Shown: positions 17,181 to 41,319, numbered from the stretch's first letter. The stretch is 64,000 nt of DNA from Geosiphon pyriformis uo1 (GCA_016748015.1 JAAOMT010000009.1:2030200-2094199), one strand, 5' to 3'. The notes: generated by a model not told the origin, from the sequence alone. Program-made: numbers and translations.

Positions 17181-19447
17181 TTAGTTAAGATTATTCGAAT
17201 GAAATTTGCAATCAACTGTGTGCTGATCATTTCCAAGCCGACGGATGGTATTATAATCAGCTAAACATCTAAGATGAAAAGATACTTATTATGAAGCGCG
17301 AAAAAGAAAGACAAGAGTCGATGTAAGAAAAAACTTACTGCCAACAAAATTCATATCCACATCCCGGCGCACGGCATGTCATATGTTCACAGCCGCCATC
17401 CTTTTCGATCTTACTTTTACATTTGGGACACGTTTTTGTATTCAATTGAATCAATTCATTACTAGCTTGTTCACCTCGCCTTTCTTCCTCGGCACGTTCA
17501 CGTTCTTGACGAGCACGTTCTTGTGCTTCAGCTTCTTCTTTTTCGTGCCGTAAAATTTCTTGTCTTGCTGCTTCACGTTCACGGGCTTCAGTAGCTTGCC
17601 TTTCTTTTTCTTCAGCTTCCTCACGTTGTAAGAATCTCTGGTTGGCAAGTTCATTAGCTTCCTGTTCAGCTAAGTATGCCTCTCGAATTTTTTTACACTC
17701 TGTGCACCCAAGGTTTTGGCTTATTGGCAGATCATGCTGAGCGCAAGATTTTTGGCCGCATGCTTTGCATACCATGATTGGCGCGTCATCTATAATTGTG
17801 AATAAGTAAATTTGACAAAATGACAAAAAATTGAACGTCTCCTTTTACCTCCTTCAAAATGTATCTGTCCAGCTTTACAATTCGGATTCTTGCACCACCG
17901 AAAATCTTCCATCTGAGAAAGTACTGAATTTACAGATAGTTGATGGAACCTGCCATGCACAATCAATTTGGTATTTTTAAGTTAAAAATAATAAACTTTT
18001 AAAAAGAATTAGCACCACTTCTTAATGCACATAATTTACCTGTCCAATGTCCCACTATCAACAAATCGTCGCACGTCAAAATCTTGCATGATAATTTTAC
18101 AGTTCTCACCAGGACAAACGATCCGAAAATTGCCTTTATCTGAAAGTTCGTGCTGAATATGGGTCCTCACGCACTCGCGACACACATTATCCTCATGGGT
18201 ACATTCAATGGTGACTGGTAAGAATTGATTGGTTGGGAATTCATCAGTACAAATGATGCATTCATGGAGTTTCGAGAGGACGATAGATTCGTAGTTAGCA
18301 GGCTTTACAACAGGGTTTGCTTTGATTGGTTGAACTTTTACTATAGGCTCATTCGATTGTTGAAATTGTATTTCTATTGGGATTTCTTGACCTTTCCCCT
18401 TATTCGATTTTGGAATTTTGCTATCATCATCACTTGTGGATTCATATTGGCTTTCTTCCTCCTCTCTTAGTCTTTCTACAAGATCTTTATCACAACCAAG
18501 ACAAGGTAAGCTACTCTCAATAATCTGATTATGCAAGATGCATGAGATTTGACCGCATTTTTCGCATGTTAGGAAAGGTGATTCTAAATCTACTATAAAA
18601 TTGAAACTTTCATTATATATATGAAGAACCAAGAAACAAGCCAAATTGAACACAAGTAACCTACTACTGGGATCATAAAACTGTTCAGTGTGACAATTAA
18701 CATTTGGGCACATCAACAATAGAAGTTCGGAATTTCCAAAAAGTTTTCTGAAGTGGTAATCGTCCTCTTCGTCATTTTCCGAGGTTTCATCGTCTTCGTA
18801 TAAATATGAAATTCTTTTTGAAGATGAACCTGATAATCTTTCTTGAAAACTACTTGAAGCCATTGGCATTACATTAAAATGAGGAATTTTGATTGGGAAC
18901 ATTGTAATTTGATTAGGCATCTGATTTTCCTCCATTGACTTGGTTGAATTTGAAAAGCATTTATCGCAAGGATAACCGCTCTCAATTTTTTGATCATGAA
19001 TTATGCACGATTTTTGGCCACATGAAACACATGTCATGAGTGGGGATGCTTCTTCAAATCGAAAAGGAGACCAAATATTTTTTCAATTTAGTACTTGATC
19101 TTGTTTGGTGTAAAAGCAATCAAATTTTTTTTAAAGTGTTACCTCCATCTTCGTGAATTTGGCCAGATTTGCATGCTAAATTTGGGCACCATTTGAATCC
19201 TGGTATCTGCGAAAAAACGTCTTGTTCCTCATCAGTAATATCTTCATCGTTTGTAGATTTCTCCTTCGCCTGATCTTGAGAAATTAACAAACGTTGAAAG
19301 CTAAAAATCAAATCAAGGAATATTTTCAAATTTAAAATCAGGACCTGATTTATGATATATATCAATTAAATTTTAGAAAATTGCTTTGAACCTCTCGAAA
19401 AAAGAATCATATGAAGTTTTTTTAATTTCCAGTGGAGAGCGATTCAT
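17181..19447 (-). CDS. RBR E3 ubiquitin ligase copy A: IBR-IBR-RING1-IBR-charged helix-RING2 (first RING absent)
   Basis: Spliced model: [19 protein letters not shown]|[22 protein letters not shown]|[19 protein letters not shown]...CPNVNC..|..CEKC..CILH..CLGC...[23 protein letters not shown]|[13 protein letters not shown]..|..CKAC..CAQH..CTEC, E/R-rich helix, [31 protein letters not shown]|CLADY..H..C. The RING2 catalytic GGC-x-H motif is intact. Exon 1 is inferred (donor AG|GTTCAA is weak). Confidence 0.85.
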
Positions 19448-20409
19448 ATTAGAACGTTTTTTAAGAAATATGTGAGTTTAAAAGTGGGTTTGGCAGGAAT
19501 AAAATTTCTTCCGAAGGATTACAAGCCTCTATGATGTTTGATACGATTTTCGAGGAAGACTAAAATTTCCCAGTTTGTTTATTTTAGCAAAATGAGAATA
19601 TTATTCAAAAAAAAAACTTTAAGAATATTTTTGCAAAAGATTTTATACCACAAGTCTTCAAAGAAACTGTTGTAGACAAACCTGTGTAAATGCTAATTTA
19701 CACCCACACATAATAATGATCTGCGTTGCAACAAAGAACAAATATAATACTATTTAACAATGTGCATAGAAGTGCATCGCTCTAAACGAAACTGGTTTTG
19801 GATGGTTTTAAAACAAGATTTTGACCTGTGCCTCACTTTCTATGTCATTCCATGTGATTTTGCTGATATGTAAATCTATCTAGACATATATGAAATAAAA
19901 ACATATGATTATTTTCTTGAATATTTTACTATGTGGCAAAAATGTTGTTTTGATATAAATCTTGAATTAAATTAATGTAATCTTATATTTAACTTTTTAT
20001 TTTTATTTGAATATTATTAATAATTAATAATATTGATATAAAATATGTTATTAATTTAATATTTTTTAATATTTAAATTTTTAATGTGAATTGTATTTAC
20101 AATAATAATAAGTGTGTTATATATTACAATTGTTAAAATATAAAATTATCTTAAAATAATTGTTTTTACTAAATTTACATTTAATAGATTTTTTTAAGAT
20201 TAAAAACAATACTTTAATAGTTTGTAATTAATAAGTTGTATATGATCTGCAATCAAACTACTATTTATAAAAATTTGATATTATTTCTTAAAAATATTTA
20301 GCTAAATAAAAATTTAATTAATAATTCAATATTGTTTAATTATGAACTTTATTAATTTTATTAATAAAAAAAATTTTTGTTAAAATTATTAATTGAAACA
20401 ATTCAAAAA

Positions 20410-20815
20410 TATTTCGTTCTGAATGATAACACGAATCAGCCTTATTGATTAGGCATTGTTAAAGGGAAAAATGCATCCAATAAAGCATTTTTTTAAGTTG
20501 TTCGTGTAATCTTTCTTGTTTTGCGATTCACCATGTCCAAAAATAGCATTGGATTCACGGATAAAAAATCCAAATGAATTAATAATGCAGACGTATAACT
20601 TTTGTCGTATCCAAAAAATCGCCTAATAGAGTTGTCAAGTTATATTATTCTTATGTTTTAAGGAGAATGCTAATAACTTGTTATTTTTGCAGATGGAATT
20701 ATCCAAGTACTTGTAAATGCGAACTACACGTTCAATAAAATGGTTGTCAATCTTGCCAAAAACTTTTGTGTGTAAAAGGTTTACGAACGCTAGAATCAAT
20801 AGAGACTGCATGAAT
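20410..20815 (-). pseudogene. Fanzor/TnpB-like (IS607-associated) RuvC nuclease remnant
   Basis: Minus strand, in order: AVSIDSSVRKPFT (RuvC-I, family consensus xxxDPGVRxxxT), GKIDNHFIERVVRIYKYLDNSI, DMVNRKTRKITRTT-KKMLYWMHFSL*QCLINKA and RVIIQNE. This matches Fanzor2/TnpB as recalled from family knowledge. Frameshifts and stops throughout; N-terminal region missing. Confidence 0.75.
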
Positions 20816-20874
20816 AGAGCCATTCGCTTGGGTTTCGTCAAACTGTTTTTGTCCAGACAAACTTCTAATCATTA

Positions 20875-21160
20875 ACTTTCTTTCCCTGCATGCGACAGAT
20901 AAAAGCTCTGTTAATGGTAAGATGTCTTGTAAAAGTTCATGCTTGTCAAAGAGAACCATGAGTTTTGGAGGAAAAGACCATTTCGCCGCTTGTTAGTTCA
21001 AATAGGGTCTTAAGTTCTGATCGTTTGAAATTGATACTTTAACCGAGATCGCTGAGTTCATAGGTTGAAAATCGAAAAAGAGATTACTTTTGTCGCTTGA
21101 GATCCTCTTTTTGCTTTGCACTAGAGACACGGGCGTAAAAGTAATTTTTATTGGTAATAG
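20875..21160 (-). pseudogene. tnpA: IS607-family serine recombinase (TnpA) remnant
   Basis: FYARVSSAKQKEDLKRQ (21140-21090, catalytic Ser motif), then ELSDLG*SINFKRSELKTLF (cf. SDIGSGLNFKRxGLxxLL), then ELLQDIL and, after a frameshift, FICRMQGK (cf. ELxEDLxxIxxxFxxRxxGxR). No N-terminal HTH seen. Confidence 0.85.
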
Positions 21161-22050
21161 AGGTGGTAGAGGCTGCGGTGACAATGATATCAGCGTTCCG
21201 AGAAGTTAACTCAGGGAAGAGAGAGATAAAAAGAGAAAAAGGTGGGGTATTGATTTTCGTAATTTTGAAAGAGAATATATATAACATACAAAGATATAGT
21301 TTAAAGTCAGAAAAATCATAAATTTACTTGTAAAAATTACTTCAATATTTATTATTACTATCGAATGTCTATTTTTTCAGTTTTTGAAATTTTGCTAATT
21401 CCAAAGTTTAAATATAAAATGCACATAATCAAAAATCTTAAGTCAGTCTTTTCGAGATTTTTCAAGATGAAAATTTTATTGCTGGAATTAAAAATTTTGG
21501 AATAATGTTATTTTTGGGTATATATACACAATTAAGTAAAATTTTAATAAAAAAAAATTAATATTTATTCTGACCAATAATCATGGTTTTTGCTATATAT
21601 CAATCTTTTGTTTAATTTAAGCAACACTTAAACTGAAATCTTTTAGATGTAATTAAATTAAACTTAAAATGTAAATTAAAGAGAATTTTAAATTTGTTTG
21701 TTTTGTTATGAATTTACTACAATTTTATATTTAAAAATTTTTATTTGTTCAAAAAAACATTTCAATATATAATAAATTTTTTTTATCCCAAAAAGCTAAA
21801 AAGTTAAATTGTAAAAAATCCTTACCAAATTCTAAATTGTGTAAACATATGCTATTAATTAAAAATGAATATCTCTAAATAAACTTGGGAAGATTACATT
21901 TAGTTACCGATTGTAGTACAAAATATTACCTCAAAACGGTAAACTGATCTGTGCCACTTTTGAGTCAATATAAATCCATGTTATGTCTTTGATCAAGTTT
22001 TTACGCATATATCAAAGAAAAATAAGAAAATCTTTAATTTGCATAACATC

Positions 22051-22698
22051 ATGAACACTAAAGTGGTTGCCCAGCAAAAAAGCTTCCTTATTTCTTCCTT
22101 TTACACCTTTTTCATCTCACAAACAAAGCTTAATTGGGATAACATAGTTCTCCCTTCTCTCATAGAATGGTTAAAAACTCATTCAATGACATTCAAAGAA
22201 ATATTTGATTCATTGCAACCAATTTCATGTTCAGCCGAAGAAGCATGTATTTTGGGTTTTTTTTATCAGTTTGGACTTGGTACGACACGAAGCTATGAAG
22301 CTTCTTTTAATTGGTACCAAGTGGCAGTCGAAAAAGGCGAACCTTTTGCTTTAATTCAACTCGGTGAATGTTATGAGAGGTCTCGAGGTTGTCAAGAAGA
22401 TAAATCGAAAACTGTCAAGTATTATCAAAAATCTGCAGAACTTGGTCATCCACAAGCTTTTTATAAGTTAGTTGAATATCAAAAAAAGCGGCAACATCAA
22501 CTTATCTGGTTACAAAAGTCGACTGTAAATGGATTTAAGCCTGCAATTGCCACAATGGCCGCGTTATTACTTTGTGGAAATGGAGTTCTTAAGGATAAAC
22601 ATGAAGCGATCAAAATAGTGTTTAAGTATGCTCCTGGAGAAGACAAAGTTGATTTTCGAAGAAAGGTTTTGGAATATTGTTTTAATTCATTTCCATAG
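22051..22698 (+). CDS. Sel1-like repeat (SLR/HCP-like) protein, intronless
   Basis: LGFFYQFGLGTTRSYEASFNWYQVAVEKG; ALIQLGECYERSRGCQEDKSKTVKYYQKSAELGHPQA; CGNGVLKDKHEA. Confidence 0.88.
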   Translation: MNTKVVAQQKSFLISSFYTFFISQTKLNWDNIVLPSLIEWLKTHSMTFKEIFDSLQPISCSAEEACILGFFYQFGLGTTRSYEASFNWYQVAVEKGEPFALIQLGECYERSRGCQEDKSKTVKYYQKSAELGHPQAFYKLVEYQKKRQHQLIWLQKSTVNGFKPAIATMAALLLCGNGVLKDKHEAIKIVFKYAPGEDKVDFRRKVLEYCFNSFP

Positions 22699-23268
22699 TT
22701 TCAGGAAGGGAAAATTAGGCCAAGAAAATATCGTTGATTTGGGAAATAACTATTAAATGCTTGAAACAATTCTTGATCATGAAACCGAAAATTTCAGGAT
22801 GTATTGGTATGAAAGGGATGAAGTTGCCAGGATATTTTTATTATTAATACCCAGACTTCACACTCACTATCATATATAAATTATTGAATCTTATATATTA
22901 AGCAAAAATTTTGAAAAGAATATATTCGGCAAGTTAATTCAGAATCTAAAATTCGGACTGACTAACAACTAGTTATCTTAGAGATTAGAAAAAAATTGGG
23001 TAGAAGATTTCAATCATCTATAACAAGTTGCCCAGTTTGGGTATTACCAATTATACTTCTGTCATTTATTTGAAGTATAAAATTATCTACAAGTATTCAA
23101 GAGGAAATTTTCTTAAAAAAAGAATTTATGTTAAATGATCAATTATTTTTTGGTTGAGAATATCTATTAAAAGGAATTGAATGAGAAAAAATTAATGTAA
23201 CTGAAAAGAGACCCAAAGGAATTATTCTAGTTGAAATATGAATTCAGCGAGTTACAGGGGAACCACGT

Positions 23269-24942
23269 TTACGCGTAACTGAGATAGCAATCATAAATTT
23301 CAGATTCGGTATCATTATCTCGCTCAACTGACTTAAATTGAAATTTGCCAGTTGTAGGCCAATCTCGTGGTCTTAATGCTGGAAAGTTGAAAAAGAAAAA
23401 ATTATAAGTAATTAAAGATCGCAGATATTTCTCAATAACAAAACATGAATCATATAATAATCTTCAATATACATACGTAAAGAAATTTTTGCATCACCAA
23501 CATTGACGCTTGGAATAAGTCGGCTTGTATAAATCGCTAATGGATCTGGTCGAGGCAAAGATCCCGAGATAACAACTTCTAACGCGTGTCTTTTTTTCTC
23601 GGCAAGAAAAAATTGCTTTTGAATTTTTCCGTTACTATTACACCAATTATGTAAGGTCTTTGCAAGCTTTTTAGTGCTTGGTCGTTTCTTTGGGTCAGGG
23701 TGCCAACAGCGTTGCATTAGCTTCACGATACATTTCGGGGTAGTCGTTGTCACAATTTCTGGTCGTAAACCTTGACATATTTGTAATGCTAGATGAGGAT
23801 CATGTGGCTCATTCATAAATGGTGGCTCACCAGTAGTAATTTCCCACATTAATATTCCGAAACTATAAACATCAGCAGCTTTGGTATAATATGTGTTGTG
23901 ACTTAAAACCTCTGGAGCAATATAAGGCATCACCCCATAAACTTCCTTAGGATCTTTACGTCGACGATAGTGATTATAACGATTTTGGGAAGTTCTAGAT
24001 GTTGTTACTAATTGTTGCATTCCATTTAAAGCTACCGGATATTCTGGAGCACAAAGAACCGGATCGGATACAAATGCATGACCACCATCGTATAAAACGT
24101 TTCCACGATGTAAATTTTTGTGCAAGAGTCCAACTTGATGCATTACCGAAAGAGTACGGGCAATCTCGTAGAGGATTTTTCGAATTTTAAACCAGCTTAA
24201 ATCTCCAAAACTTTGAGCCGTATAATCACCAATATTTCCTTTACTCGCGTACTCTGTCACTAAATAATAAGTTTGTGAATATGGTCGACGAGTAATCCCA
24301 AACCAACGTAGCATATATGTATCTTTTGTGATGCTACATTGATACGCTGCTCGAAGCTATTGTCAGAATAAGGGTAAAACATGAAATTATTTTTCAGATT
24401 AAGAATTTGGATCATATCATTCAACTCAAATATTAATGATTGAAAGGGTCGGTTCAGCTCACCCTACGTAGAAATGATACTGAGATTCTGGTTCGATTTC
24501 TTAACGGCTTCAACGCAACAATCCAACCACCCCCTCGCCTCCATTGATTTGAAACCTCATCAAAGGCTACAATCGGCCCATCCTTCCATAACGCTTGTTC
24601 TACCGTACCATAGCCTCCAACACCAATCTCTCGAATATTGGTTAGCCGATCAAATGGTATCCACTCCAAAATGTGTTCATATTTCTGTGCATTTAATTGT
24701 CTATACCTGATAAATTCATCAAATCCGCCATGACTAGAATGCAATTCTGGAAAGTCAGCCTCAAAACGAAGTGGATTACAACCCCAACACACTTGAATGC
24801 CATGCTTAGGCCGTTTCCGATTACATCTTTGACATCGAAGTGTCGTGAAAATTGATGGTTTTTTCTTTTTTACGAAAGCCGTTTTGCTATTCCGCTTTGC
24901 AGCTGTTGTGAGTTTGGTTATATATGGAATTGGTTTTGGCAT
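23269..24942 (-). CDS. TKL-family pseudokinase, 3 exons
   Basis: N-terminal CxxC...CxxC, EWIPF, GVGGYGTV, VALK; intron 24462-24357; catalytic loop HKNLHRGN (Asp replaced by Asn); DFG replaced by DPV; GVMPYIAPE, ADVYSFG, CWHPDPKKRP, YTSR; last exon ends ...CYLSYA* at 23269. Confidence 0.88.
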
Positions 24943-27900
24943 GGTTGGATAAAAAAATTTTTAAGAAAATGTTTTATTCCGAATTTGCAAAAAAGCAAAT
25001 CAGTTAGATATGGAATCGGGGGAGGGGGGGGGCAGAAAAGCTTGACTATAAATTTTGAAGTGATCCGATAAATGAAGGGTAACTTATAGATCACGATTAC
25101 TATATCACCGATCGGGATGCGGTTAGCGGGCTGGTTCCTAGCTCGCAGGTAATTGGAGCTTATAGGGCTATTTTGGTTAAGATATTAATTAATTTGTGGC
25201 GAAGTTTCAAGTAAAACCAGCAGCGAACAAACCTTTTTTGGGGACAAAGTTAACAAACACATACAATTTATACTTGACGACTAGATAAAAAATACTAATG
25301 ATTTCATAAACGTATATAAATGATATTAAATATTGATTCAATATTTTTATTTGAAACAATGCGTGCGAATATAATCGTTCTTTAAATGTTATCGCTTACT
25401 TGAGCCGAGGTTGAGTGAGTAATTTCGATAATTCTTTAAATTTAGGAATTAAAGTTTGAGTTAATTTGACCCGAAAGTAATTTTTTTGAGTTTCAAAGTT
25501 TGGAAATCGGATGATAGATTTTTGCTAAATATGGAAAAATGAGTCTAGTTTCCGAAGAAAAAAGATGATAACTCTTATCTCAAATTTCGCAAAATATTTT
25601 GATCCAAACAAATAATTTTGAAGATCATGGTGATGATGACGATTATGATGATTGTGATGATGATAATGATTATGATGATTATTTAATGACGTTTACCATT
25701 AGATATAAACGGAGAAATTCATCAAAATTAATAAAAAGTGTATGAAAAACAAATTTATATAACAATTCTAAACTAATAAATATCTTTACTTTGGGTGACG
25801 GAAAAACATTGATATTATATTGCTAAAATCAATACTTATTATTATGATTATCAATCACTAAAAAGACAAGAGAATTTTAGAGGAACAAAGTTTCACCCAG
25901 GAATTTATAGATACGATAGATGTTCGATTGATCACGAATAGGAAAATTTTCATTTGAAAAGGATGCGAGAATTTAGAGATTGGCAAGATATCGAGTCCGA
26001 ATTGCTCAACTATATTAATAACTAGTCTTCACTCTTGTTATTCCCCCCAGCTGTTGACCAAGAGGTTTGAAACTATAAAATAAAAAAGTAATGATTGGTT
26101 TAATAAAAATAGACCGGGGAAATTTATAAAATTTTCAAAAAATTGGTGTATGACTGATAATGTTTAACTAGGATAATATTTATTTTTTAATCTATGAACT
26201 CTTGCTTAAAATTACCAAACCCCTCGAATTGATAAAAAAATTGCAAATAAAACAAATTTTATGATTTTGATTCATAAAACCTTTCTTAAGAGAAAGTAGC
26301 GAAAAATTTTCAATTATTAAAAGTTTTTATTAGTCAAGATTTTGAATGTTCATTTATTATTAATAAATTTTATAAAGAAAAAAAAACGTGTTATTTTTTA
26401 AAATTACTAAAGATAAGTTTGTTGAAATTAAAGAAAGGTTAATATTTGACTAAAAAATTTTTAATTAAAAATAATAATAATTAAACATTAATGAAAGAAA
26501 TTTTGCTAAAAATGAAAACAAAACAGTTTTATCTTTTTTCATAAATAGTATTTTTTTGATATAATATTAAAAACAAAAGATAAACTGATTTAAGATAAAA
26601 AACAAATTTAAAACTTACCAAATATGTCAACAAATATAAAAAATGTCATCTACTTTGACGGTGTTTTTAAATAAAAAGTATAATGTAATAATTTTCATAT
26701 TTGTAAAATAAATATTTCATGACTTGGTTCATTTATTAAATTAACTTTTTATGTTTAAAAATTAATTTTTTATTATATTTATTACTATTCTTTAAAATTG
26801 ATTTCTTAATTTTAAAATATTTTTCATAATTAAAAAAATAAGAATATTTAAATGTATAAATCTTGTGAATAAGACTTTTTTTTATAATTAAGATTGATTT
26901 ATAAAAATTAATATTAAATATAATTTTGAAAATTTTATTTTATTTTATTTAGAATATTTAACTTTCAACAAATATTGTTTTTATATATAAACTATTAATG
27001 ATTAGGTTAAATTGAAAAATTAATAAAAGTTTAAACAAATTAATAAATAAATAAATAAATTTTAAAAAAAGTTTCAAGTAATCAAATCATTATAAACACA
27101 AAATATTTAATTCAAATTAAATTGTTAAAGTAAATTTTTTTATTCAATTTTTGATGTTTTACAACTTATTATTTTTTATATCAGTTTTAAATATTGAAAT
27201 TAATGATGTAGTTTAAATTATTTAAATGTTTAATGATTTATATTTTAATGATTATTTTAAATGAAGAAATTTTGATTTAAATTACCAGATTATTAAAAGT
27301 GAATACAAAATTTTAGTCGAAATTTTCAAATATAATATTAATATAATATATAATACAATCTAATTTCATTATATTTAATATTATGAATTTCATTTATTTA
27401 TGACATTATTTTGAAAATCACAAATTTTTCTACTATGGTAAGTTGATGTTAAATAATATTAAAATTCAAGTTAAAAATGACAGAAAATTTTGTTTAACTC
27501 ATTATAACATTTATTATTATATACAAATATTACACATAATCTTTAATGAAAAATTTTACTATTAAACTACAAATTGCTAGACAAGGTATAATTTTAATAT
27601 ATATAAAAAATTTCGAGTTGCTGTCAATCAAAATACTTTTTTCACTTTAATGCTTTATTTCATTTTTATTAAGAATATTAAATTTTGGTATTTTTTCAAA
27701 TATTTAGACTTCTAAATCCTAGAAATTCGTGTCTTTTTAAAATTTCCTTTTCTATTTAAAAATAAATGTTGTATTTTAACACCTTTTTGATTTATTTTTA
27801 GATATTAAGATGATGAAGAGTAAGTGAAAATTTTCTATTATCTATTTTCGGAGATTTTATTGTGTAAGGTAAAAAAAAAAAAAAAAAGAAAAGAAAATAC

Positions 27901-28518
27901 TTTCTAAAGTAATACAATATCGTTATCCTTGTGTTAGAACGCTCCTGCGATATTTACAATAACTTTATTTAAAACTGGTCATCTCAATTGCTTAAAAAGA
28001 ACTCTCTACAAGGCAAAATTTTAATCTCTGAATATCTACACCAAAAACTAAAAGAAGTTCTCCCGGAAAGCGAACCAGTTCCGATTCCCTATATTTAGAT
28101 CCGAACCGAAACTAACCAAACAGCAGTATATTGGTAGCCTCTGAAAAGAAAATGAACCTTTAGCAGGTAACATTTTCCGAATTCACAAGGCGCTAATTTT
28201 TAATTCATGTCGACCGAATAGTAGTACCTACCATTAAAAAGATGTGGAGTAAAAAGGTTTCGATAAAAAAAGTAATTAAAAGGAACATTTTATCTTAATA
28301 AATGAAAATTTGTAGTTCGAACCTTTCTTTATCAGATATATGACTTGGTTAAAAGAGATTCTTGAAAAAATTCTCAATTACAAGATCAAAAAATTGAGCG
28401 ACATATTTTCTATATAAAACGATAAATATTTTCATGAATAAAAACCACCTTTCATTTAATTTACGAGCTTTGAAAGAAAAGACTTTATCAATTTCTAAAA
28501 TTTATCCAAAACCTTTCA

Positions 28519-28802: not shown

Positions 28803-30035
28803 AACTGCAACATCAAAGATATATGAAACTGTATCAAAATAATCCCTATTTGAAAATTCCAAAAATTTACTTCTCGCTGAAAGTATGTTAATAAACTATT
28901 CTGTAAATGTCATTTTGAATATATTGGATATGAAATCAACGAGAGAATAAATTTAAATATAAAATGTTTGTATAGAAATGGGTGTTTGAATGTGCTGGAA
29001 GAGGTTGATTTGAAAATATTTGCCTCTGTTCAAGATTTTGAGAGGTGAACAGCAAAATCATTAATTGGATTTTTTTTTGAATCTATTTTCAAGATTAATC
29101 ATCTTATTATGACCCATTTAATTACAATTCTGTCACAAAGAATTAATTTTTAAATGGTGTTCAAATTTACCATGTAATTCTTTATAATTTTATATCCAAG
29201 GAGTTAATTCGAGTATTTCCAATTAAAATTTAACTTGGTTCAATACTTCAGGATTATTAAATTCTTTGGACTTTTTTATTTTTCCCAATTTAGCACTGAA
29301 CATAATATGCATTGAATGCAGCAAAAACAACTTGATTTTCCAATCGATAAACACTGATTGATTCAAGTTAATATATATCCCAAGATCCAGAGATAACAGA
29401 GTAATATTTGGATTGTGAAGCTCTACAATATTCATAACCAGGACAGAAGGATCTTTCACTTGAAAGTGGAAAAAGGCTTCTTGAAATAGCTCAATTATTA
29501 TATGGAATTGATATTTATTTCCATGTAAATTACCTAACAACAATTTTCCTGAAGACCGAGTGAATCTAGACAGGAAATAATTTGTATTTTTTAACATTTT
29601 CTTGACAAATTCGTTATAATTAATGAAAAAAATGTATAAAAATAATTTTTAAGAAAATGGTAGCATATTTCAAATTTTTATACTAATGTTTTGAATTCAA
29701 TTTCTATTTTCACTTTTAATGGTAACAACATCCTTAACGATATTAACAAGAATTGCGGATACTTTATTTTGAAAACCATCAGTTATCTTAAAAAGTTTTC
29801 TCTTTGTAAATTTCGAATATTTGAATATTAAAAATCGGTTAAATTTCAGAAAAAATAGAATTATTAATTATTTTTTTAATTTAAATATATTCACTAGATC
29901 TCAATTTAAAATTTTGTTGATATTAATACAATATAAGATACAAATATGACTGATAAACAAATACCTTTTTGGCCATTAATTAGTTCCTTTTTAAAGAAAT
30001 AAAAGTTTGTGCAATTACTTTAGGTAAATGATCAA

Positions 30036-33000
30036 TTACTCAAGATTAAGAGCGTGGAATTTACAATCACTTTTGTGGCGTTCATTTCCAAACTGACGGA
30101 TAGCATCAAAATCGGCAAGACATCTAGAAAAATATGAATGGTGCTAAGCTTGAATTCACCAAGAGTACATGAAAAACAATGGTTTGAAGTGAAAAAGTAC
30201 TTACAACCAACAGAACTCATATCCACATCCTGGAGCACGACATGTCATATGTTCACAGCCGCCATTCTTTTCAATTTTGGTGGCACACTTTGGACACCCT
30301 TTGGTCTGTTCATTTATTAGAACATTCGTAGCTTCCTCGGCCTGTCGCTCTTTTTCAGCCTCTTGAAGAGCCCTTTCTTCAGCTTCAGCTTGTTCCTTTT
30401 CTCGTTGTTGTTTCGCAAGTTCATCACCCAGCCGTTGGGTTATTCGTAGAGTTTCGTCGACTTCTTCTGTCTGAAGAAATTTGAGGGTGGCAAGTTCGTT
30501 TTCTTCTTCTTGGGCCCATCGTAATGAATGTCGTTTCTCACATTCAGTACACATTAAATTGGTGTGAATAGGGAGATCGTGTAACACACAAGTTTTTTGG
30601 CCACATTCTTTGCAAGTCATTATCGGTGCATCAACTAATGAAAATCAATGATAATCTTAACATTTGTAAGACAAATTGAGGGATTGATTTTGTGTAATTA
30701 GAAAGAAAATACCTCCTTGGTAATGGATTTGGCCAGCACCACAACTCGGATTTGAGCACCATCGGAAATCGGGCATTCTGGATAGTACCGAGTTTAGGGA
30801 AAGTTTTTGGAATCTGAAATTTTCTACATTTTTAAGTTTCATTGAATTGATCATGGCATTACATGGATAGAGCTTTAATAGCATACCTCGAGAAAACTTG
30901 ACCATTTGTAAATCTTTTCACATCTTCCTCTTGTAATATAACTTTACAACCATGACCACCAGGACAGGCTATGGTAATGTTTCCCTTATCCGATAATTCA
31001 TGGCTAATATGTGTTTTAACACATTTTTTGCAAACATCATCCGGATGAGTACATTGAATGGTTGTTGGGAGGAAGTGCTCAAATGGACGTTCCATTGTAC
31101 AAATTATACACTCTTTTGTTCTGCCTGATATTGTCATCTTGCTCTCGACTGATAATTGCCGCTTCATTGAAGTTTCTCCAAGAAGCTTAGATTTTAGGTG
31201 GTGATCAGTTTCGAATTCCTTCAAGACGAATAATTGATCCGTCATTTGATCCGTGAAAATTGCTCGTTCTTTACCTTTGCTGCTTGGATGCGGCTGATCT
31301 GGGGATTGCTCAAGCGATGCCAACGTGTATGCTGTATTTTCGTCGCATTCCATGCATGAAAGACCATTATAAATTAATCGGTCATGAATGTGACATGATA
31401 ATAGACCACATTTTTTACACTTCAAAAATCCATCTATTGAAGATATGAAGAGAAGAAATAATTTTTTAGCTCCAAGCTAGCTGAAAATCTCCAAATTTAT
31501 TAGGTACCGTATAACTTACCACCCTTAGCATAAAATTGACGAAGATTGCATTGTGGGTTCGCGCAATAATACCATTGTTTACCGACTGATTCTGCACTCG
31601 AGACTGAAGATCCCTTGATTTTTCTTTCTACAATACGTTGATGTGACTCATGTAGTTCAGGGAAGTTTTCTTTGCTTTTGGTCTTTTTGAATGTCTTTAA
31701 CCGATCAATAGTGTTTGGTGAAATATTTGTTTCCATATTAGGGAAACTAAGAGCACAGTCAGGGCATGATACACCAGTTTTAATATTTTCTTGAGTCGAT
31801 ATGGAATTCAATTTATCTAGTTATAGGTATCAAATCATTCGTACTGGAACGATTTTTTAAGGTCAAATCAAACGAATTTTTTTTTTTGAATTATTACCTC
31901 CATTTCCTTGACTCTCCCGGTTGCTACAGACTGGATTTGTGCACCAGTTAAAGTGTGGAATTGTGAACCTCGCCGAAAGTTCTTGGAACCTATAATATTA
32001 TAAAGAGTGTTATTATATACAAAAACAATCAATTGTGCTAAATTTAATTATAAATTACAAGCAAACCTTGCATAAACTTTGAAATCAGCAAGCAGCTTAA
32101 TGTCACGTTCTTCCATAATACGATCACAACCCTTGGCAGCTGGACAAGAAATTTGTGTATTTTTTTTTAACATGACCTCACGCTTTATATGTGTGCTGAT
32201 ACACATTCTACATACATCGTATTGATGTTGGCAAGATAATGTTGCCGGGCTATATTGGAACAAAGGAAGTTGCTGGTGGCAATTTTGACATTCTTGTGTT
32301 AAGGAAATTCTGCTTGTAGATTGTGACCAAAAGTCTCCTTGAGTCTCTATGAACGGTATTTTACGATTTTCTATAATTGAATTAAGATGGTTTGCTGATT
32401 TTTCAATCGGTTTTGGTCTTTGCACCGGCTGTGGCATTAACATTTGCATGATATCCTGGTTTTGAAATGAAATGTTTTCGATGGATCTTTGTGGCTTATA
32501 ATCTGTGTGAATTAATGATTGCATTTGCTCAATATAATTTTGTGGTTGATAGGCTTCTGGTTTGGGCGGCACAGGGGGTGGGGTATGTCTGTGGACTATA
32601 TTGATCAACGGCTCGTTGTCTGAACGATTATCTTCTGAGTGCAAATCCACAGACAATTCATGATCAGAATCATCAATATCTTGATCACTTCCCTCATTAT
32701 CTGTTTCAGATCCTAAATGTGATGGTGATGGTGATGGTGAACCATCAATAACCCCAACTAGATCTTGAATATTTTCAGATGTAGAGGAAGTTGATGACTG
32801 TACATAAGAAATAGTGTCGTCATGTAAATCGATTAGTGATTCCTCATGTCTTGGCTTCGAGTGGAACGCCCTAACCGTGTTTTCGGATTCTGCGAAAGAA
32901 GTTTGAGAGGTAGTTACTCCGGCTTGAAAATTTCCTTCTGTTATATTAGCATAAAAATTTCTTTCGTTAATCACCGACGACTGGTTTTCGTAGTCACTAC

Positions 33001-33409
33001 CATAATAAACTTCGGGTTCTTTTGTCCAAGCTTTCTCAGTAAAGTCATTAACAAGCTGCCTCAATTTACTAGTTCCTTTTGATTTCCCTTTCTTGAATTG
33101 TTTAAAAGCACCCCTCTTTTTCCCGCCTCTTCCTAAATTCACTGTTTCATCCGATGATATATATCGAGATGGGCCTCTTTGGGGTTGAATTCCGCCATCA
33201 TTGACAAGATTAGCTCGCCGATTTCGAACAAAGCGAACGTTAGGGTTTTCTTCTATAGGAATATCCTCAAGGACTGCTGACAAGTTTCTCGTAATATGGT
33301 GGTTATTGTGGGCTTCATTTGATGTTTGATTCCGTTCCGCGTGAAATCTTGGCCAATCTATTTCAATATGATTGATAGTTTCCATAAATCTACTCGTTTC
33401 ATTACCCAT
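30036..33409 (-). CDS. RBR E3 ubiquitin ligase copy B: long N-terminal extension, RING1-degenerate IBR-IBR-RING1-IBR-charged helix-RING2, 7 exons
   Basis: MGNETS..., acidic region, [33 protein letters not shown]|FQEL..WCTNPVC..|..CPDC...CANPQC..|..CKKC..CHIH..CMEC...[24 protein letters not shown]|[13 protein letters not shown]..|..CKEC..CVLH..CTEC...[31 protein letters not shown]|[28 protein letters not shown]. All junctions are GT-AG and in phase. Confidence 0.9.
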
Positions 33410-36400
33410 ATTTTCAAAAAAATACTTTCACTTGCGAACTGGATATCAGTTGTGTTAATGTACTTGTTCAAAGGTTAAAGCAGTCAATAGCGTGTGAAAA
33501 GTGGGAAATTCTTACGATTGTCTTTTTTCGAATGTTGTCGTAAAACCATTTCGATCAACACATCGTAAGTGACTTATTTTTAGATGAAATTTTCTGTTTT
33601 TTTTATCATTTATGGGTTAAATCGGCCTTGTCTCAAGTTAATTATTTCCAAAAGGGTTTCGCATTCCCCAAACAATTTCCCAGTTTGGTAAATTTATTAG
33701 AAATGAACTCAAAATATTTTGACGGGATAAATTTATGCTCTTTTGATCCACAAAGTTCTTTAAGATTATCAACAGATTCTTTGGGCTAGATCAAGCATTC
33801 ATATGCATACAGTTTATATATCATATCCTAATGTGGTAAAAACCGATCTATTGTTTTGTATATTATCCCATTATCGTAACTTCCACACGACAAGTAATTT
33901 GTCAAATTGATCGTCTAAACAGGATCTTCTTTCCTAAAATGGCTCAAACTTTCTTCCGTCAATATCTGGCGGTTGTCTATCTTGGGCTTAGATTAAATGG
34001 CAAATTGTTTGTCAATATTTTGCCAGATAACAATTTTCATTGACGATTATTCATTTATTGATTTGTTTTTTTGCCTTTGTTTATTCTAAGAAGCATTACA
34101 AAATAGCCAAGGCATCCATTTTACTATATTGTAGCATGTAAAAATGTTAAAGAAAACCTCTAGTTATGGATAACCAATCGACTTTGAATAGATAAAATGA
34201 TAAAAAGCTCATTAATAATGAGGTTAGAACAAACTCTCTAGCTTTAAATGGAAACCCCAGAATTTAGAATTAAGAGATCAAGTGCAGATTTGTTTGGAAA
34301 TTTTCATAAAATTTAATTATTTTTTCTCTATTATCTCTTTGTGCATAGGCTGTTTTCCATATTAGGGAAAATGTTTACAAGAAAGAGATTAAAGACAATA
34401 TTTTATGACCAAAGAAAGCATTTTTGTCATTGGAATTTCAGCTGAAACATCCTAGGCAAAGTTTTTTTGAAATATATTATTATGAACGAGTTAATTTATA
34501 TTTTTTAGAAAATGACTTCATATACCATTTTTCAATTTTTGCCGCTTCAATTTTCCGCTGGTCAGGGTCTAATAGCTTGATTATTTCATTCTCGAGATAA
34601 AAAATATTAGGCTATATTAATTAAAACAGTATCTTATTAAAAACTTCTTGTTTCAAGTGATTTTTAATATATATCTATCAAAGCTTATGGGATATTTGGA
34701 AAAAACCCCCAAAAACCAAAAAGTGATGTAGCATTCGGAACTGCAAATTAAAGATAAAACTGTATGAACTACAGTAAATTACAATTACCTGAATTCCCAA
34801 ATTATAATCCCGGGCTTGAGTGGATTATTTTTTAAAATTTGAAGTTTATAAACAGGGAGGTTGGGACTTTGCTTGGTAAAAAAATATAGCAAAAAAAGTG
34901 AAAACCGTGCTAGCTTTGGAGTTAAGAATTTTCGAGAATTCGAGTAAAAATGAATCTAATAATTCATTCTCACAATTGATTGACACATTCATAATTTTTC
35001 TTATGAAATAACATATTTTAACATCTGTTATTCTTCAAAATATTTAATTTGTAATTATGCATGTTTTCTAGTGATATAAAATTTATGCCTTAAAATGCAA
35101 GAACTTGAGAGAAAATTAAAGAATTATTATATTTTATATTGATACTTTTAAAGTATCTCATTAAAACTCTTCTGTAAACACTAAAAATTTGATTAAATTG
35201 TTATTTTAATTATTTTAACCAATTTAAATAATAGTTTGAATTAACAAGAAAATATTATACAACTTTTAGTAAATATATATCAAAGTACAAATATAAAAAT
35301 AAAACAATATAAATAAAGTATTTATTAATAAAAGTAAATATCTGTTTATAAAATAATCAAAAAAAGATATCAATATTTTTTGTTGTATCTGTAATAAAGA
35401 TTCAAATTGAATAATTTTAAAACTAGTAAAAAGAAAAAAAGTAATAAAACTAAAAAGTACCAAAATTGTATACATAAATTGTTGCATCTTTTTTAATTAT
35501 ACAAAAAATTCAAATGTCAATACTTTTTTACTCAAACTTCTTAAATTATTTGTATTAAATAATTTTAAATTTTAATATAATTTGAAATATATAAAATTAA
35601 TGCAAATTGTTAAAAAAACTCCAAAAGAATTTTAATATTATTAATTGTACTAAAAGTTTTTAATTATAAAGTAAAATTAAATAATATATAAATAAAATAC
35701 ATGTAAAATTTTACTTGAATAAAAAAACTCATTTTTTAATATTGTTTTCAAATAGTTTTCATATGTTTAATAAAAAATATTATAGTTAATTTTTTAATAA
35801 TTTAAACTTTTTTACTTAATTCAATTATTTAAACAAATATAATATAATTTAAAATATGTAAAATTTGTTACATTAAAATCCAAACAAATTTGTACAATTT
35901 TATTAATCATTTTATTATATTTCAAGTTATGCAAATCATGTTACAATAAATTTACTTTTAAATACCAAAAAATAAAGTTATTGTATAGTATTTGTTTGGT
36001 TAATAAATAATGCTCAAATTATTAAAATTTTTACAATTTATTAATATATGATTTATTTTTAATTTAAATTTTTAATAATTTAATGTAAATAACAAATTAT
36101 AAAGAATCAAGTATTTGTTTTTTAATAAAATAATTTTTTATATTACTTGTTTATTTTTTATATGTTTTTCTTATATTATCAATATACTCAAATTTATATA
36201 TTAGTTAATATTACTAAATATTTTTTACAAGTAATATATTAATTGAAAAATTATGTGCATTTTTTGTCAAAAAGTAATATATATTTTTATGAAATTTAAT
36301 CTTTATTTATTGGTTTACAATGTGTTTTGATTGTTTTTCTTTTTTACTTTTGTTTTTTTGTTAAATTGAAGATTTTATACAATATTTGATAATTCAAATA

Positions 36401-37013
36401 TAATTTAATTAAAATTGAATGGTTATTAAAATAAGCAAAGATTTTAGCATATATTAGTTTAAAACACTTAATTGATTGATTGGTTCAAATATGTTTTTTT
36501 TCAAAAATTTTAAGATATAATCCAAAAATTAAAAATTCCGGAAATGCCGTTTTGTTATTTTGCTCTTTAATAGTAATTATGTAAAAGTTATTTTTTAAAT
36601 AATACTTAGTTGAATATATAAATTTGAATGAATTGGTTTTTTTTTCATTTGTATTTTTATTTATTTATTTATTTTACAGGTTTTAAAGTTACCTGGAAAA
36701 TGAGTAGTTTTGATTAAGTTTCTTCATGAATGATTGTATAAATAAAAAAATTTTTATTTGTTTTATGTAATAAGAGGATTTTGTGAATAATTGAGAATCT
36801 ACCAAGATAGAAATAAAAAATACCTTTTAGCTGAAGTTGTCAATTTCTTTGAGAATATATCATTATAGTGAAAAAAAATTTTGACTACACTTTTTTTCTT
36901 TTAACTAAATGGTAAATTTGTTTATAAAACTCGAGTTTTAATAAAATGATAATAAATTCCAAGTTGAAACCAAAGAAATATATATTAAGAATAAGGATTA
37001 CAAGTGAATATTT

Positions 37014-37045
37014 ATGCTAAATGAAACAGCCGTTTCATTTAGCAT
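37014..37045. repeat. Perfect 14-bp inverted repeat (hairpin)
   Basis: ATGCTAAATGAAAC-AGCC-GTTTCATTTAGCAT. Confidence 0.9.
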
Positions 37046-38590
37046 TCAGAATTTTGCATATTTTTATTGAATTTAAAAATTGTTGGAAAATAAATATTTT
37101 AATTGAAAACTAAAAATACAGTTTAAAATATTTGATTTCCTAAATTTAAGGAAAATTAGTAAATTAAAAACTTTTTTTTATTTTTAAACATCTTTATAAT
37201 AATTCGTTTTGACAAAAAAAATTTAACTTTATATTGTTAATCTCATCTAAGAAAAAAGAGCGAAAAGAACGTAAATAATCATATGCAAAGATTCAAAAAT
37301 CATTATTGACTAATCAATAAATATATAATGTTAAAAATTAATGGATAAAGAATTGGTACCAAAATTGGTCATCAACTTGTTTATATTTTTTCTTTCCAAA
37401 TATTATTTAAATTAATCATAAAAAAAATATATTTCCTGTTTAGGGAAAAAAACCAAGAACCCATTCAAGAAATGGCAACAATGATTTCTTGTTCAAGCAG
37501 ATAAAAAAGTTGATTTTTTTTCTTAACTAAAAAAGCTACTCAATGGCAGTTTCTTATTTATGCATTACACAGTTTAATCTACCCTTTTTTAAAATCTCCA
37601 GATCTTTCCTAAAATTTAACTACATGAAGCAAGGGATAGCTTCATCTTTTTCAACTGCCCTTATAGCAAACTTGAAGATTATGTTTTCACCTGATTCAAA
37701 CGATATGCACTATATAGTTTTATGTTACAGTAAATATAACACATTAATACCCGTGTTTCTAACATTTTAAGACTCGCTTTTCAGATGAGGTTTCAGCAAA
37801 AAACATCAAAATTATTAGACATTAATTTCGTATTTATCCGAAATTGATTAATTTTTATTCATCGCTATTCCCTGATGTTATATAATTAGCTTTTTTCTTT
37901 CGAAACAAGTATTTCAAAATTGAGATGTTTTAGACTTAACTTGTTTTAGACTCCCGGACCTAAAAGATTGTTTAGTTGATTTGACGCAGTTCAACGTTCC
38001 ACCAAACACACTTAGTTCAATTGGATGAAACTAACCTCTTCATGTTGTTCAAAAATAATTTTATATTCAAAAAAATCCTTTGTCTAATTTCCAAAAAAAT
38101 ATGCTGTGTATTTAATGTGCCATATCACGAGAAAATGAATAAATTTAATTTCCTGTTTGCAAATAAAACCTTCTTTTAAGGATTTTCGTTGTCTTTCATA
38201 AATTAATTTATCATCGGAAGACAAGTCGAGTTCTCGTATAGACTTTCTTATGAAAGTTCGTCACGAATCCTTGATAGATTGACTTTTTACCAAAAAATTA
38301 ACACCTTTACAAAGTGATATAAAGATAAATTTCTAGTTTGTCAAAATTGTATCAACCCATCGAATTGACAATTTCCTTGTATTATTTGGTAAAATAAGTT
38401 TTATTTTTTTAGACGTAGAATGGTTTGCACAAATAAATTTTAAATACTTGACATTTTTCTCCAACACCGAATTGTGAATATTTGTTTCTTTCCCGAAATT
38501 TAGTATTCTTTTCAAAGAGGATTATTGGCATTCATTCCTGTATTAAATATTTTCTACCACCCACCACACAACCTTCAAAAAGTACTAAAT

Positions 38591-41319
38591 ATGAATCAAA
38601 GTCAAATCAGATATTCAAGCATTCCGTTTCTTCAACCCCAAGATTATGCTTCCGTATCCACAACAGACATTTTTAACAATCAGTTTTTCAATGACTCTAT
38701 GGACTATCCTCCTCCAACTCATGAACTTGCAATCAAAAAATCACCCTTACAAGACGTTCTGGACGATAATTGTTGTGATCAAACAACTACTAGAATTTCC
38801 TCGAATATCCAATGCCACAAATGTCATGAACACATCCCATGGACCAAGTTCATCCCAGCTACCGCGAAATGTACCAATAAATGCAATGTGTGCCCGGCTT
38901 GTATTAAAAAGCATATTGAATATGAGGTGATGGTGAGGAAGACTGGGATAATTTGGTGTCCAGCTGGAAATGAGTGTCGCGGTTTTATGACTGAGCAAGA
39001 TGTGCAATTATTTGCGAGTAACGAAGTCTTTAAAAGGTATTTTTTTGGATGATCGCTGATTTATAGCTGTAAACAGAATTTTTTTTAATCAATCATTCAG
39101 CCTTTTAATTTTCGAAATGAAATGTTTTCTGAATGGATTTATAGGTTCCAGCAATTAGTGATTCCTGAAATTCGGTCAGAGACTAAATCTATAGACGTCA
39201 AAGATGCTGCCAATGTGGAAAAAGAGACTTTTTCTGAAATACCAGGGTTCAAATGGTGTCCAAATCCAGCATGCGAATCTGGACAAATCCACGAAGATGG
39301 AGGTAGCACTTTAAATAAAATTTATTTGATTGTTTTTACACCAAACACAAGATCGAGTAAAAAAAGTGAAAATTTTTGCGGCTACTTTTCGATTTCAAGA
39401 AAAATCCCCGATCATGACATGTTTTTTATGTGGTCAGAGATCATGCATAATTCATGATCAAAGAATCGAGAGCGGTCATCCTTGCGGTAAATGCATTTCG
39501 CATTATAGGACATCGATGGGAGAATATCCGCAACCAATCCAAACTCAAAGTGGGATAGAAAATTCTACCTCGGCAGTTCAAATTTCCACAGTGAGAAACT
39601 CTCCTTTGTATACATCGCCAATGACATCAAAAACCTCTCAAAGACCGTCATCAACAAGCTGGTTTCCATTCGAGATTAGGGAAATCTTTGACAGCATAAA
39701 AAAGGACAAAGGAAAATCGAAACAAACCTTTGAAAACTCTGAACTCATGTTTTGGGTGTGTCCCAATGTTGATTGTGGTATTGAACAGATTCATGAAATA
39801 AATGGTGGCTAATTTGTTTTCAATTTGGCTTATTTCTTCTGTTATTGATAGGTTTTCAAACTTACTCAAAAGTCATTTTTTTAACATAATTTAGAATCAT
39901 CCTTTTCAACATGCAAACAGTGCCGTGAAATTTCCTGTGTCTTACATAATCGGGTTATTGGGAATATCTCAGCTTGTGTTGATTGTGATAGCGATTTTGT
40001 AAAAAGACTAATGGAGGAGCAAGGAAGTCAATACGCATCTCCAAGTGGTGATAATAGCAAAACTACAAAATTGAATAAGGGAAAAGGTCAAGCACTCCCA
40101 ATAGAAATACAATCTCAGAAATCAACCAGCTATTATGAGCAAAAAGGAAATGAACGTCTAGAACAATTTCAACAAATCAAAGCAAGCCCGGTTACACAGT
40201 TTCCTGATTACGACTTAATTGTACTCGCGCAAACCCGTGAATGCGCCATTTGTGCTGATGAATTCCCGATCAATCAATTTTTACCAGTCACTATTGAGTG
40301 CGCCCATGAAGATAATGTGTGTCGTGAGTGTGTGAGCACGCATATTAAGCACGAACTTGCAGACAAAGGCAATTTCCGGATTATTTGTCTTGGTGGTGGG
40401 GGCTGTAAAATCATTTTGCAAGCTTGTGATGTGCAACGATTTGTTGATGGTGAGACTTTGGAAAGGTGAGTTTACTTGCAGATTCATTGTTTTTTAATAT
40501 TTATTTTCAATTTTTGAAGGTTTTGAATATTTTGGATCATGATAGGTTTCATCAACTTTCTGTGAATTCGGTACTTTCCCAGATGGAAGATTTTCGATGG
40601 TGTAAAAATCCGAATTGTAAAGCTGGACAAATACATTTTGAAGCAGGTAAAAGCAATAGTTAATTTTTTCTGTCATTTATTTCGATTTTGGGATTCTGTC
40701 ATTTTTTAATAAGTTGCTCCCTTAGATTATGCACCAATCATGGTTTGTAATGCATGTGGTCAAAAATCCTGCGCTCAGCATGATATGCCAGTAAACCCAG
40801 ATGTTGGCTGCACAGAATGTGAAAAAATTCGAGCAGCATGGTTGGCTGAACAGGAAGCTAATGAACTTGCTACAAAAAGATTCTTGGAACGTGAAGAAGC
40901 TGAGGAAAGAGAACGCCAAGCTACTGAAGCCCGTGAACGTGAAGCAGCGAGACAAGAACTTTTACGACGTCAACAAGAAGAAGCTGAAGCACAGGAACGT
41001 ATTCGTCAAGAACGTGAACGTGCCGAGGAAGCAAGACGAGCTGAACAAGCTACTAATAATTTGATTCAATCGAACACAAAGGCGTGTCCTAGGTGTAAGA
41101 GTAAAATCGAAAAGAATGGCGGCTGTAATCATATGACGTGTAAAGCTCCTGGATGTGGATATGAATTTTGTTGGATGTGAGTTGAAAATTTTTTTATTCG
41201 ATGATTTTGATACTATCTTGTGGGTCGGGACCAAATTGAACGTCTTACAATTATTTTTTTTGCTTTTCAGATGTTTGGCTAGACATGGAGGGCCTCATAA
41301 TTTTCCTTGCCGACGTTAA
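38591..41319 (+). CDS. RBR E3 ubiquitin ligase copy C: RING1-IBR-IBR-RING1-IBR-charged helix-RING2, 7 exons
   Basis: MNQSQ...[25 protein letters not shown]|[13 protein letters not shown]..|..CFLC..CIIH..CGKC...CPNVDC..|..CKQC..CVLH..CVDC...[15 protein letters not shown]..|FHQL..|..CNAC..CTEC...[31 protein letters not shown]|[15 protein letters not shown]. Close paralog of copy A; e.g. [32 protein letters not shown] is identical. Confidence 0.9.

Follow-up and report, generated by a model that had tools for sequence, protein, structure and literature searches.

Clustered RBR ubiquitin ligase paralogs of Geosiphon pyriformis with a probable regulatory or binding pseudo-RBR head

In this study, we analyzed a stretch of 64,000 nucleotides (nt) from Geosiphon pyriformis (Glomeromycotina, order Archaeosporales), hereafter the window, which covers positions 2,030,200-2,094,199 of contig C701 in an assembly of 128 Mb. 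The window holds three genes, here called copies A, B, and C, which on sequence evidence are members of the RBR ubiquitin ligase family with a non-canonical extension. Instead of the single RING1-IBR-RING2 triad of canonical RBR ligases, copy C combines a complete RBR core with a head made of an additional RING1 (RING1') and two additional IBR domains (IBR1 and the divergent, putative IBR2), in the order RING1'-IBR1-IBR2-RING1-IBR3-helix-RING2. In copy B, a low-complexity N-terminus of ~370 amino acids (aa) is followed by the same order with a degenerate IBR1, and copy A reads IBR1-IBR2-RING1-IBR3-helix-RING2, without RING1'. We consider it rather probable that the three genes are clustered paralogs of a Glomeromycotina RBR E3 family in which this pseudo-RBR head serves as a non-catalytic regulatory or binding module.

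The three loci are intact seven-exon genes, each deposited in GenBank as a "hypothetical protein". Protein-to-DNA mapping matches the GenBank proteins to the window residue for residue and places the gene ends at the positions given below. All introns are of the GT-AG type, measure 59-108 nt, and follow the phase series 2-1-1-2-1-2 in each of the three genes. The splice junctions read from the DNA in an exon-by-exon analysis, before any gene model, were the same as those of the GenBank models, and a stop-to-stop reading gave Cys/His-rich pieces in the expected order in all three stretches. The original prediction, made from the DNA alone, had placed three multi-exon paralogs at these very coordinates, and both the exact mapping and the independent splice reading agree with it. 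The full-length sequences analyzed below are the GenBank proteins, and codon comparisons were run exon by exon. Positions are counted from the first letter of the window.

38591-41319, + strand: copy C, gene G9A89_017294, protein KAG9307464, 726 aa, exact protein-to-DNA mapping; exons 38591-39036, 39145-39302, 39400-39804, 39895-40465, 40546-40646, 40726-41176, and 41271-41319
30036-33409, - strand: copy B, gene G9A89_017293, protein KAG9307463, 965 aa, exact protein-to-DNA mapping; exons 33409-32067, 31989-31898, 31816-31520, 31433-30887, 30813-30713, 30634-30205, and 30123-30036
17181-19447, - strand: copy A, gene G9A89_017289, protein KAG9307459, 597 aa, exact protein-to-DNA mapping; exons 19447-19392 (annotated putative first exon of 18 aa), 19300-19143, 19051-18665, 18592-18040, 17949-17849, 17789-17339, and 17268-17181

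Domains were scored with profile hidden Markov models (HMMs) built from canonical single-triad relatives only, which keeps the scores non-circular. Exon-by-exon Pfam scans were marginal for RING1 and for the split IBRs because introns cut these domains, and the calls were settled with the full-length proteins and the family HMMs. RING1' scored 44 bits in C and 51 bits in B and was absent from A. IBR1 reached 70 bits in C and 72 bits in A, as opposed to a non-significant 13 bits in B, and IBR2 reached 21 bits in C, 28 bits in B, and 21 bits in A. The core domains scored higher, with 86 bits in C and B and 97 bits in A for RING1, and 96, 110, and 104 bits in C, B, and A, respectively, for IBR3. 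The resulting domain map is as follows.

38804-39031, + strand: RING1' of C (aa 72-147), with Foldseek matches to the RBR RING1 structures 1wim and 7v8f
39209-39500, + strand: IBR1 of C (aa 171-235), Pfam IBR 35.5 bits, with a phase-1 intron (39303-39399) inside
39717-39992, + strand: IBR2 of C (aa 308-369), divergent, 8/8 ligands of the C6HC pattern, with a phase-1 intron (39805-39894) inside
40233-40460, + strand: core RING1 of C (aa 450-525), with CAIC, whose Ile aligns with HHARI Ile188 in the phmmer alignment to ARIH1
40547-40826, + strand: IBR3, the core IBR, of C (aa 528-594), Pfam IBR best stretch aa 526-589
40827-41075, + strand: linker between IBR3 and RING2 of C, a helix predicted by AlphaFold2 (AF2)
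41076-41316, + strand: RING2 of C (aa 678-726), containing [19 protein letters not shown], with the Cys aligned to the active-site Cys of ARIH1
32072-32299, - strand: RING1' of B (aa 371-446), with CQNC and 8/8 ligands kept
31752-32071, - strand: degenerate IBR1 of B (aa 447-500), Pfam IBR 15.5 bits
31339-31619, - strand: IBR2 of B (aa 545-609), 8/8 ligands
30892-31119, - strand: core RING1 of B, with CIIC
30534-30812, - strand: core IBR3 of B
30306-30533, - strand: helix linker of B
30039-30305, - strand: RING2 of B, with GGCEHMTC
18951-19233, - strand: IBR1 of A
18486-18752, - strand: IBR2 of A
18045-18269, - strand: core RING1 of A, with CIIC
17689-17948, - strand: IBR3 of A
17440-17688, - strand: helix linker of A
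17184-17439, - strand: RING2 of A

The core of the three proteins carries the features of the family. Its RING1 is of the C3HC4 type, has eight zinc ligands and is followed by an IBR (86-97 and 96-110 bits over the three copies, respectively). The whole-protein Pfam IBR score is 62-85 bits, and the zinc ligands of the core are invariant in the family alignment. Each protein has a single RING2, detected by Pfam IBR_1 and IBR_2 with E values of ~1e-12 to 1e-14 and bearing the motif CP[KR]C...GGC[EN]HMTC, in which copy C has Asn (GGCNHMTC) and the other two copies have Glu (GGCEHMTC). In a column-for-column alignment, the catalytic Cys and the His after it match GGCNHMVC of ARIH1, which is also the best match of the core by phmmer (E = 1e-17) and by Foldseek (E = 4.5e-9). 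Hence, the order RING1-IBR-IBR-RING1-IBR-RING2 with one catalytic RING2, as originally predicted, is borne out by the HMM scores and the single RING2 of each protein. Between IBR3 and RING2, one continuous helix of ~88 residues is predicted (residues 146-233 of the AF2 model, predicted local distance difference test [pLDDT] 90-97), in which Glu, Arg, and Lys account for 48% of residues in C, 48-50% in A and C, and 41-50% over the three copies. In the model, this helix resembles an ER/K-type single alpha-helix or a coiled coil. A linker of similar length, less charged, is found in the canonical paralog KAG9307449.

The composition of the head differs between copies. The claim that B and C each carry one extra RING1 and two extra IBRs holds for C but only in part for B, where IBR1 is degenerate and retains 4/8 ligands, namely its first four Cys (WCTNPVC...VSCPDC), the second zinc site being gone. 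Copy A, for its part, has to be corrected, since it contains both extra IBRs and no RING1'. We found no relic of RING1' upstream of A or elsewhere, as a genome-wide search with exon 1 of C returned only RING1' of B and six core RING1s; the DNA homology between A and C begins inside exon 2, where A 19260 corresponds to C 39185. Structure prediction for residues 60-380 of C gave pLDDT values of 71-96 for RING1', 66-83 for IBR1, and 75-87 for IBR2, and all PDB matches of this model in Foldseek (E < 0.001) were RBR ligases: HOIP, HOIL-1, RNF216, ARIH1/2, and Parkin. The idea that IBR2 is what remains of a RING2, and that the head was thus once a complete RBR, was considered and rejected. IBR2 scores 21-35 bits with the IBR HMM versus 0 or less with the RING2 HMM (-2.7 in C), and it carries the phase-1 intron typical of IBRs, not the RING2-type intron. 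Ahead of RING1', the ~370 residues of B are rich in Ser, Pro, and Asp, as compared with a stretch of ~70 residues in C, and the N-terminus of B (33392-33409, - strand) reads MGNETS, which fits the consensus for N-myristoylation (Gly2, Ser6).

The anatomy of the genes points to the origin of the head. RING1'-IBR1 is collinear with the RING1-IBR units of 17 relatives in our alignment, its two introns match theirs in position and phase, and all three IBRs are interrupted by a phase-1 intron after "G". The repeating phase series together with the collinear alignment leads us to infer that the head arose by internal exon-block duplication, probably in the ancestor of A, B, and C. In the RING1 tree, which is built on 75 columns and leaves the deeper forks unresolved, the RING1' of B groups as sister to that of C (support 94/92). 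Because synonymous sites are saturated between B and C, the head is old within the Geosiphon lineage. The pair formed by A and C, which lie in opposite orientation, is younger (dS ~0.6). Altogether, the family comprises six genes in this genome, five of them within ~85 kb of contig C701, and the three paralogs outside the A, B, and C set are canonical RING1-IBR-RING2 proteins. The sixth gene lies on contig C604 (1000-8200; RBR exons 5340-5735 and 5981-6436) and is near-identical to one of the C701 members. Of note, the homology between A and C at the DNA level ends with exon 6 (C 41183), and that between A and B extends through the last exon. The tail encoded by the last exon of C (41271-41319, + strand) is shorter ([15 protein letters not shown]) and recalls CLGPWEPH of ARIH1. 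The 3' end of C seems to have been replaced or to have strongly diverged.

The position that matters most for the function of RING1' is the one that contacts the ubiquitin-conjugating enzyme (E2). In HHARI, Ile188 is at the centre of the contact with the E2 UbcH7, and the I188D change strongly lowers activity (PMC5548887). Among the core RING1s of the hit set, 138 of 146 have Ile or Val at the equivalent position, the residue before the second Cys. A single one of the 14 extra RING1s does so, and the remainder have Lys (eight), Gly (two), Asn, Thr, or Arg (one each). Fisher p is 6e-13 for this contrast, with the qualification that the cases are non-independent, since those of the Gigasporaceae share descent, and amount to ~5-7 independent events. 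In Geosiphon, the residue is Lys in RING1' of C (CHKC) and Asn in that of B (CQNC), as compared with CAIC in the core of C and CIIC in the cores of A and B. Besides having CHKC where C-x-[IV]-C is expected, RING1' of C shows Asn in place of its His ligand and a new Cys two residues further on ([12 protein letters not shown]), which could substitute for the missing ligand at the seventh-ligand gap. The RING1' domains of C and B retain seven or eight zinc ligands. The original prediction had suggested three roles for the extra module, namely a second E2-docking site, an autoinhibitory or allosteric sensor, and a decoy. With a second dock, two ubiquitin-charged E2s (E2~Ub) could serve the one RING2, or the ligase could choose between E2s. 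Consistent with this proposal, RING1' has the full fold and spacing of an RBR-type RING1 and keeps the Pro after the seventh Cys as well as the residues at +3 and +4 after the sixth Cys; moreover, the loss of a single contact residue does not prove that E2 binding is lost. However, the central hydrophobic contact is replaced in both copies, the His ligand of C is gone as well, and 13 of the 14 extra RING1s, from several lineages, lack Ile/Val, as opposed to 8 of the 146 core RING1s. We therefore regard a second dock as improbable, and canonical E2 docking is probably absent from RING1'.

The main alternative to a functional pseudo-RBR head is that the head is a neutral by-product, a "domain stutter" left by exon-block duplication in a young, fast-turning family and now decaying without a role. 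Several observations weigh against our reading and speak for this one. The extra module looks partly dispensable, as half of IBR1 (4/8 ligands) is lost in B and RING1' is lost in A, and the three canonical paralogs of the same genome manage without a head. IBR2 is weak against generic models, with Pfam IBR scores of 16.5-22.3 bits that lie under the gathering score of 24.3. Between B and C, aa identity is 31-38% in the extra modules versus 58-67% in the core, so that the extra modules, like the linkers, evolve faster than the core. In addition, searches with junction fragments, described below, found no transcripts. On the other hand, the ratio of nonsynonymous to synonymous substitution (dN/dS) between A and C is 0.4 overall and, in estimates based on ~60 codons per domain, 0.30 for IBR1, 0.47 for IBR2, 0.31 for RING1, 0.09 for IBR3, 0.28 for RING2, and 0.67 for the linkers. 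The values of the two extra IBRs are far below 1, which indicates that these domains are under purifying selection. Across the saturated divergence between B and C, open frames and GT-AG sites have been maintained, and so have the 8/8 ligands of IBR2, which are present in all three copies along with the phase-1 intron of the other IBRs, and the seven or eight ligands of RING1'. Moreover, Gigasporaceae and other groups gained comparable extra modules on their own and have retained them, and the Ile is lost there too. For these reasons, we hold a neutral, decaying duplication to be unlikely, though less so than a second dock. The same data temper the view of a rapidly evolving family: the extra modules do evolve faster than the core, but purifying selection prevails between A and C, with dN/dS of 0.09-0.47 in the domains.

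A different objection is that the architecture might be an annotation artefact, in which the gene caller fused a canonical RBR gene with a small RING/IBR gene lying head to tail with it. The RING1'-IBR1 junction requires an intron and is the sole link that depends on a single one, and Met codons between IBR2 and RING1 in C and B could start a short isoform. In word-based protein searches aimed at transcript-derived fragments, RING1'-IBR1 junction fragments of C and B matched nothing, a weak negative because of the word and length limits of the tool, and with no transcript found across the junction, the single-message claim rests on the anatomy and on the deposited gene models. This anatomy, however, argues that each locus is one gene. 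Each IBR is split by an intron, and its halves must therefore be spliced together; the C-half of IBR1 shares an exon with the N-half of IBR2, and the C-half of IBR2 lies with the core RING1 in a single open exon of 183-191 codons, unbroken in all three copies despite strong divergence, with no Met between IBR2 and RING1 in copy A. The intron between RING1' and IBR1 falls inside the Arg codon after F-x-R, in phase 2, that is, at the same position and in the same phase as the undisputed intron between RING1 and IBR3. Given these shared exons and matching intron phases, which agree with the original view of one gene per locus, a merger of two genes is very hard to reconcile with the data and we give it little credit.

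With canonical E2 docking probably absent from RING1', the pseudo-RBR reading assigns different tasks to the two parts of the protein. From what is known of the family, E2~Ub would dock on the core RING1, where the Ile/Val contact is kept, and ubiquitin would pass to the Cys of RING2 (GGC[E/N]HMTC) and then to the substrate. The head, RING1'-IBR1-IBR2, which contains no catalytic Cys, may be a regulatory or binding module, considering that its zinc ligands are kept, that it evolves under purifying selection, and that its E2-contact residue is replaced. It could inhibit the core from within the same molecule or act as a decoy for it, or it could offer a platform for ubiquitin or partner binding, as RING1-IBR units do in other RBRs. 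A model of RING1'-IBR1 together with the ubiquitin of Geosiphon scored 0.12 against a mark of 0.34 and counts neither way. The gene structure, the domain content, the duplication origin, and the loss of the E2-contact residue are read from the sequences in the present work; the regulatory role of the head is what we infer from them.

The family is not restricted to Geosiphon. It was detected in Geosiphon, Ambispora, Gigaspora, Cetraspora, and Racocetra and is hence common to Archaeosporales and Gigasporaceae. We searched 1.84 billion representative proteins with a profile of the exon that holds the C-half of IBR2, the linker, and RING1, and A, B, and C were the only proteins that matched it end to end. 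A word-based protein search with the N-terminal module returned only the query itself, a weak result owing to the word and length limits of the tool. Among the 150 best relatives, RING1-IBR-IBR-RING1-IBR-RING2 or its truncated form was seen only in the three proteins of the window. Multiplied RING1/IBR modules in other arrangements occur in 14 of these 150, including RING1-IBR-RING1-IBR-RING2 in Gigasporaceae, and RING1-RING1-IBR-RING2 and RING1-RING1-RING1-IBR-RING2 in the basidiomycete Calocera cornea and environmental proteins. Thus, the particular order is peculiar to this cluster but the multiplication of modules is not. UniProt gives some of the multi-module relatives, among them Gigaspora, Cetraspora, and Calocera proteins, the generic name "RBR-type E3 ubiquitin transferase".

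The closest parallels are found in the Gigasporaceae (Gigaspora margarita KAF0427025 and CAG8613032, Cetraspora pellucida CAG8508928, and partial proteins of Racocetra). Like the Geosiphon proteins, they have an extra RING1/IBR before a single RING2, and Lys occupies the position of the E2-contact Ile in their extra RING1. Unlike them, they are arranged as RING1-IBR-RING1-IBR-RING2 or RING1-RING1-IBR-RING2 and never as RING1-IBR-IBR-RING1-IBR-RING2. The RING1 tree unites the RING1s of Gigasporaceae, extra and core alike, in a clade (99/96) that excludes the RING1' pair of Geosiphon, which means that the duplications were independent. The two Gigaspora margarita proteins CAG8613032 and KAF0427025 also bear an N-terminal CBM21 starch/glycogen-binding module (Pfam E = 8e-8 and 3e-5, respectively); a carbohydrate-binding RBR recalls the reported action of HOIL-1 on glucans. 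In Cetraspora pellucida CAG8508928, a hydrophobic N-terminal stretch (~40-105) looks like membrane helices. The canonical paralogs of Geosiphon (KAG9307449 and KAG9307452) and Ambispora gerdemannii (CAG8598149 and CAG8566448) share 35-47% core identity with the proteins of the window but consist of a single RING1-IBR-RING2 without the N-terminal pseudo-RBR.

Among characterized ligases, ARIH1/HHARI and ARIH2 are the most similar, giving the best match of the core (RING1-IBR and RING2) in sequence and in fold. The RING1 C-x-I-C aligns at Ile188, RING2 GGCNHM is common to both, and the tail of copy C, CLARHGGPH, resembles CLGPWEPH of ARIH1. However, no more than 14-28 residues follow the RING2 motif in A, B, and C, and no Ariadne domain is detected in them by Pfam, so their architecture is not that of the Ariadne subfamily. 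They also differ from Ariadne proteins in having no acidic or UBA-like N-terminus, in the charged helix of ~88 residues that replaces the short linker between IBR and RING2, and in the RING1'-IBR-IBR module in front. A functional analogy may be drawn with the RING0, REP, and Ubl of Parkin, the Ariadne domain of HHARI, and the UBA of HOIP, non-catalytic parts that control E2~Ub or the RING2 Cys from within the same chain, as the head is suggested to do. These accessory domains have unrelated folds, in contrast to the Geosiphon head, which is a copy of RING1 and IBR and for which autoinhibition is a possible role.

The original prediction did not recognize this architecture as a described one. 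In agreement with this, we found no paper on RBRs with extra RING1 or IBR modules, and A, B, and C alone match the exon profile end to end. Within a literature coverage that is incomplete, we likewise found no account of a tandem or double RBR, of two RING1 domains, or of an RBR in Glomeromycotina. The proteins with a pseudo-RBR head thus appear to be an undescribed variant of a well-known family.

The cluster is set in AT-rich DNA (~21-38% GC in 2-kb windows), together with the following open frames.

5803-6477, + strand, and 9585-10454, - strand: two HMG-box proteins, near the cluster
15142-15798, + strand: DDE_3 transposase fragment, near the cluster
22039-22698, + strand, and 44472-45269, + strand: two Sel1-repeat proteins, near the cluster
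23412-24942, - strand: tyrosine-kinase-like kinase, near the cluster
59695-60480, - strand: cytochrome P450 exon

Gene families like these neighbors are known to be expanded in Glomeromycotina genomes. Three further long open frames, 47156-48568 (- strand), 48663-49403 (- strand), and 52748-53998 (+ strand), of 470, 246, and 416 aa, had no Pfam match at E <= 0.001.

To our knowledge, the RBR ligases studied so far are all restrained by accessory domains of unrelated folds, and the evolution of such control is still an open theme of the field. Here, the ligase's own RING1 and IBR have been copied to supply the accessory part, and in this copy the E2-contact residue has been repeatedly lost and the zinc sites have been kept. 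Tentatively, the tandem of pseudo-RBR and RBR may represent a recurrent, convergent form of regulation, in which an E2-blind RING1-IBR copy works as a decoy, an autoinhibitor, or a ubiquitin sensor and would have arisen independently in Geosiphon, Gigasporaceae, Calocera, and environmental eukaryotes; we see this as possible and distinctly less likely than the regulatory or binding role proposed for the Geosiphon head itself. If the head does nothing, the cluster would be an ordinary lineage-specific expansion of genes and domains in arbuscular-mycorrhiza-type fungi. If it regulates the core, it would show, in a simple and testable form, how internal duplication can give rise to a pseudo-domain. 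The interest lies mainly in the recurrent E2-blind RING1 copy, which, if this reading is true, would be a natural scaffold for studying allosteric ubiquitin binding and further RING1-IBR roles separately from E2 docking.

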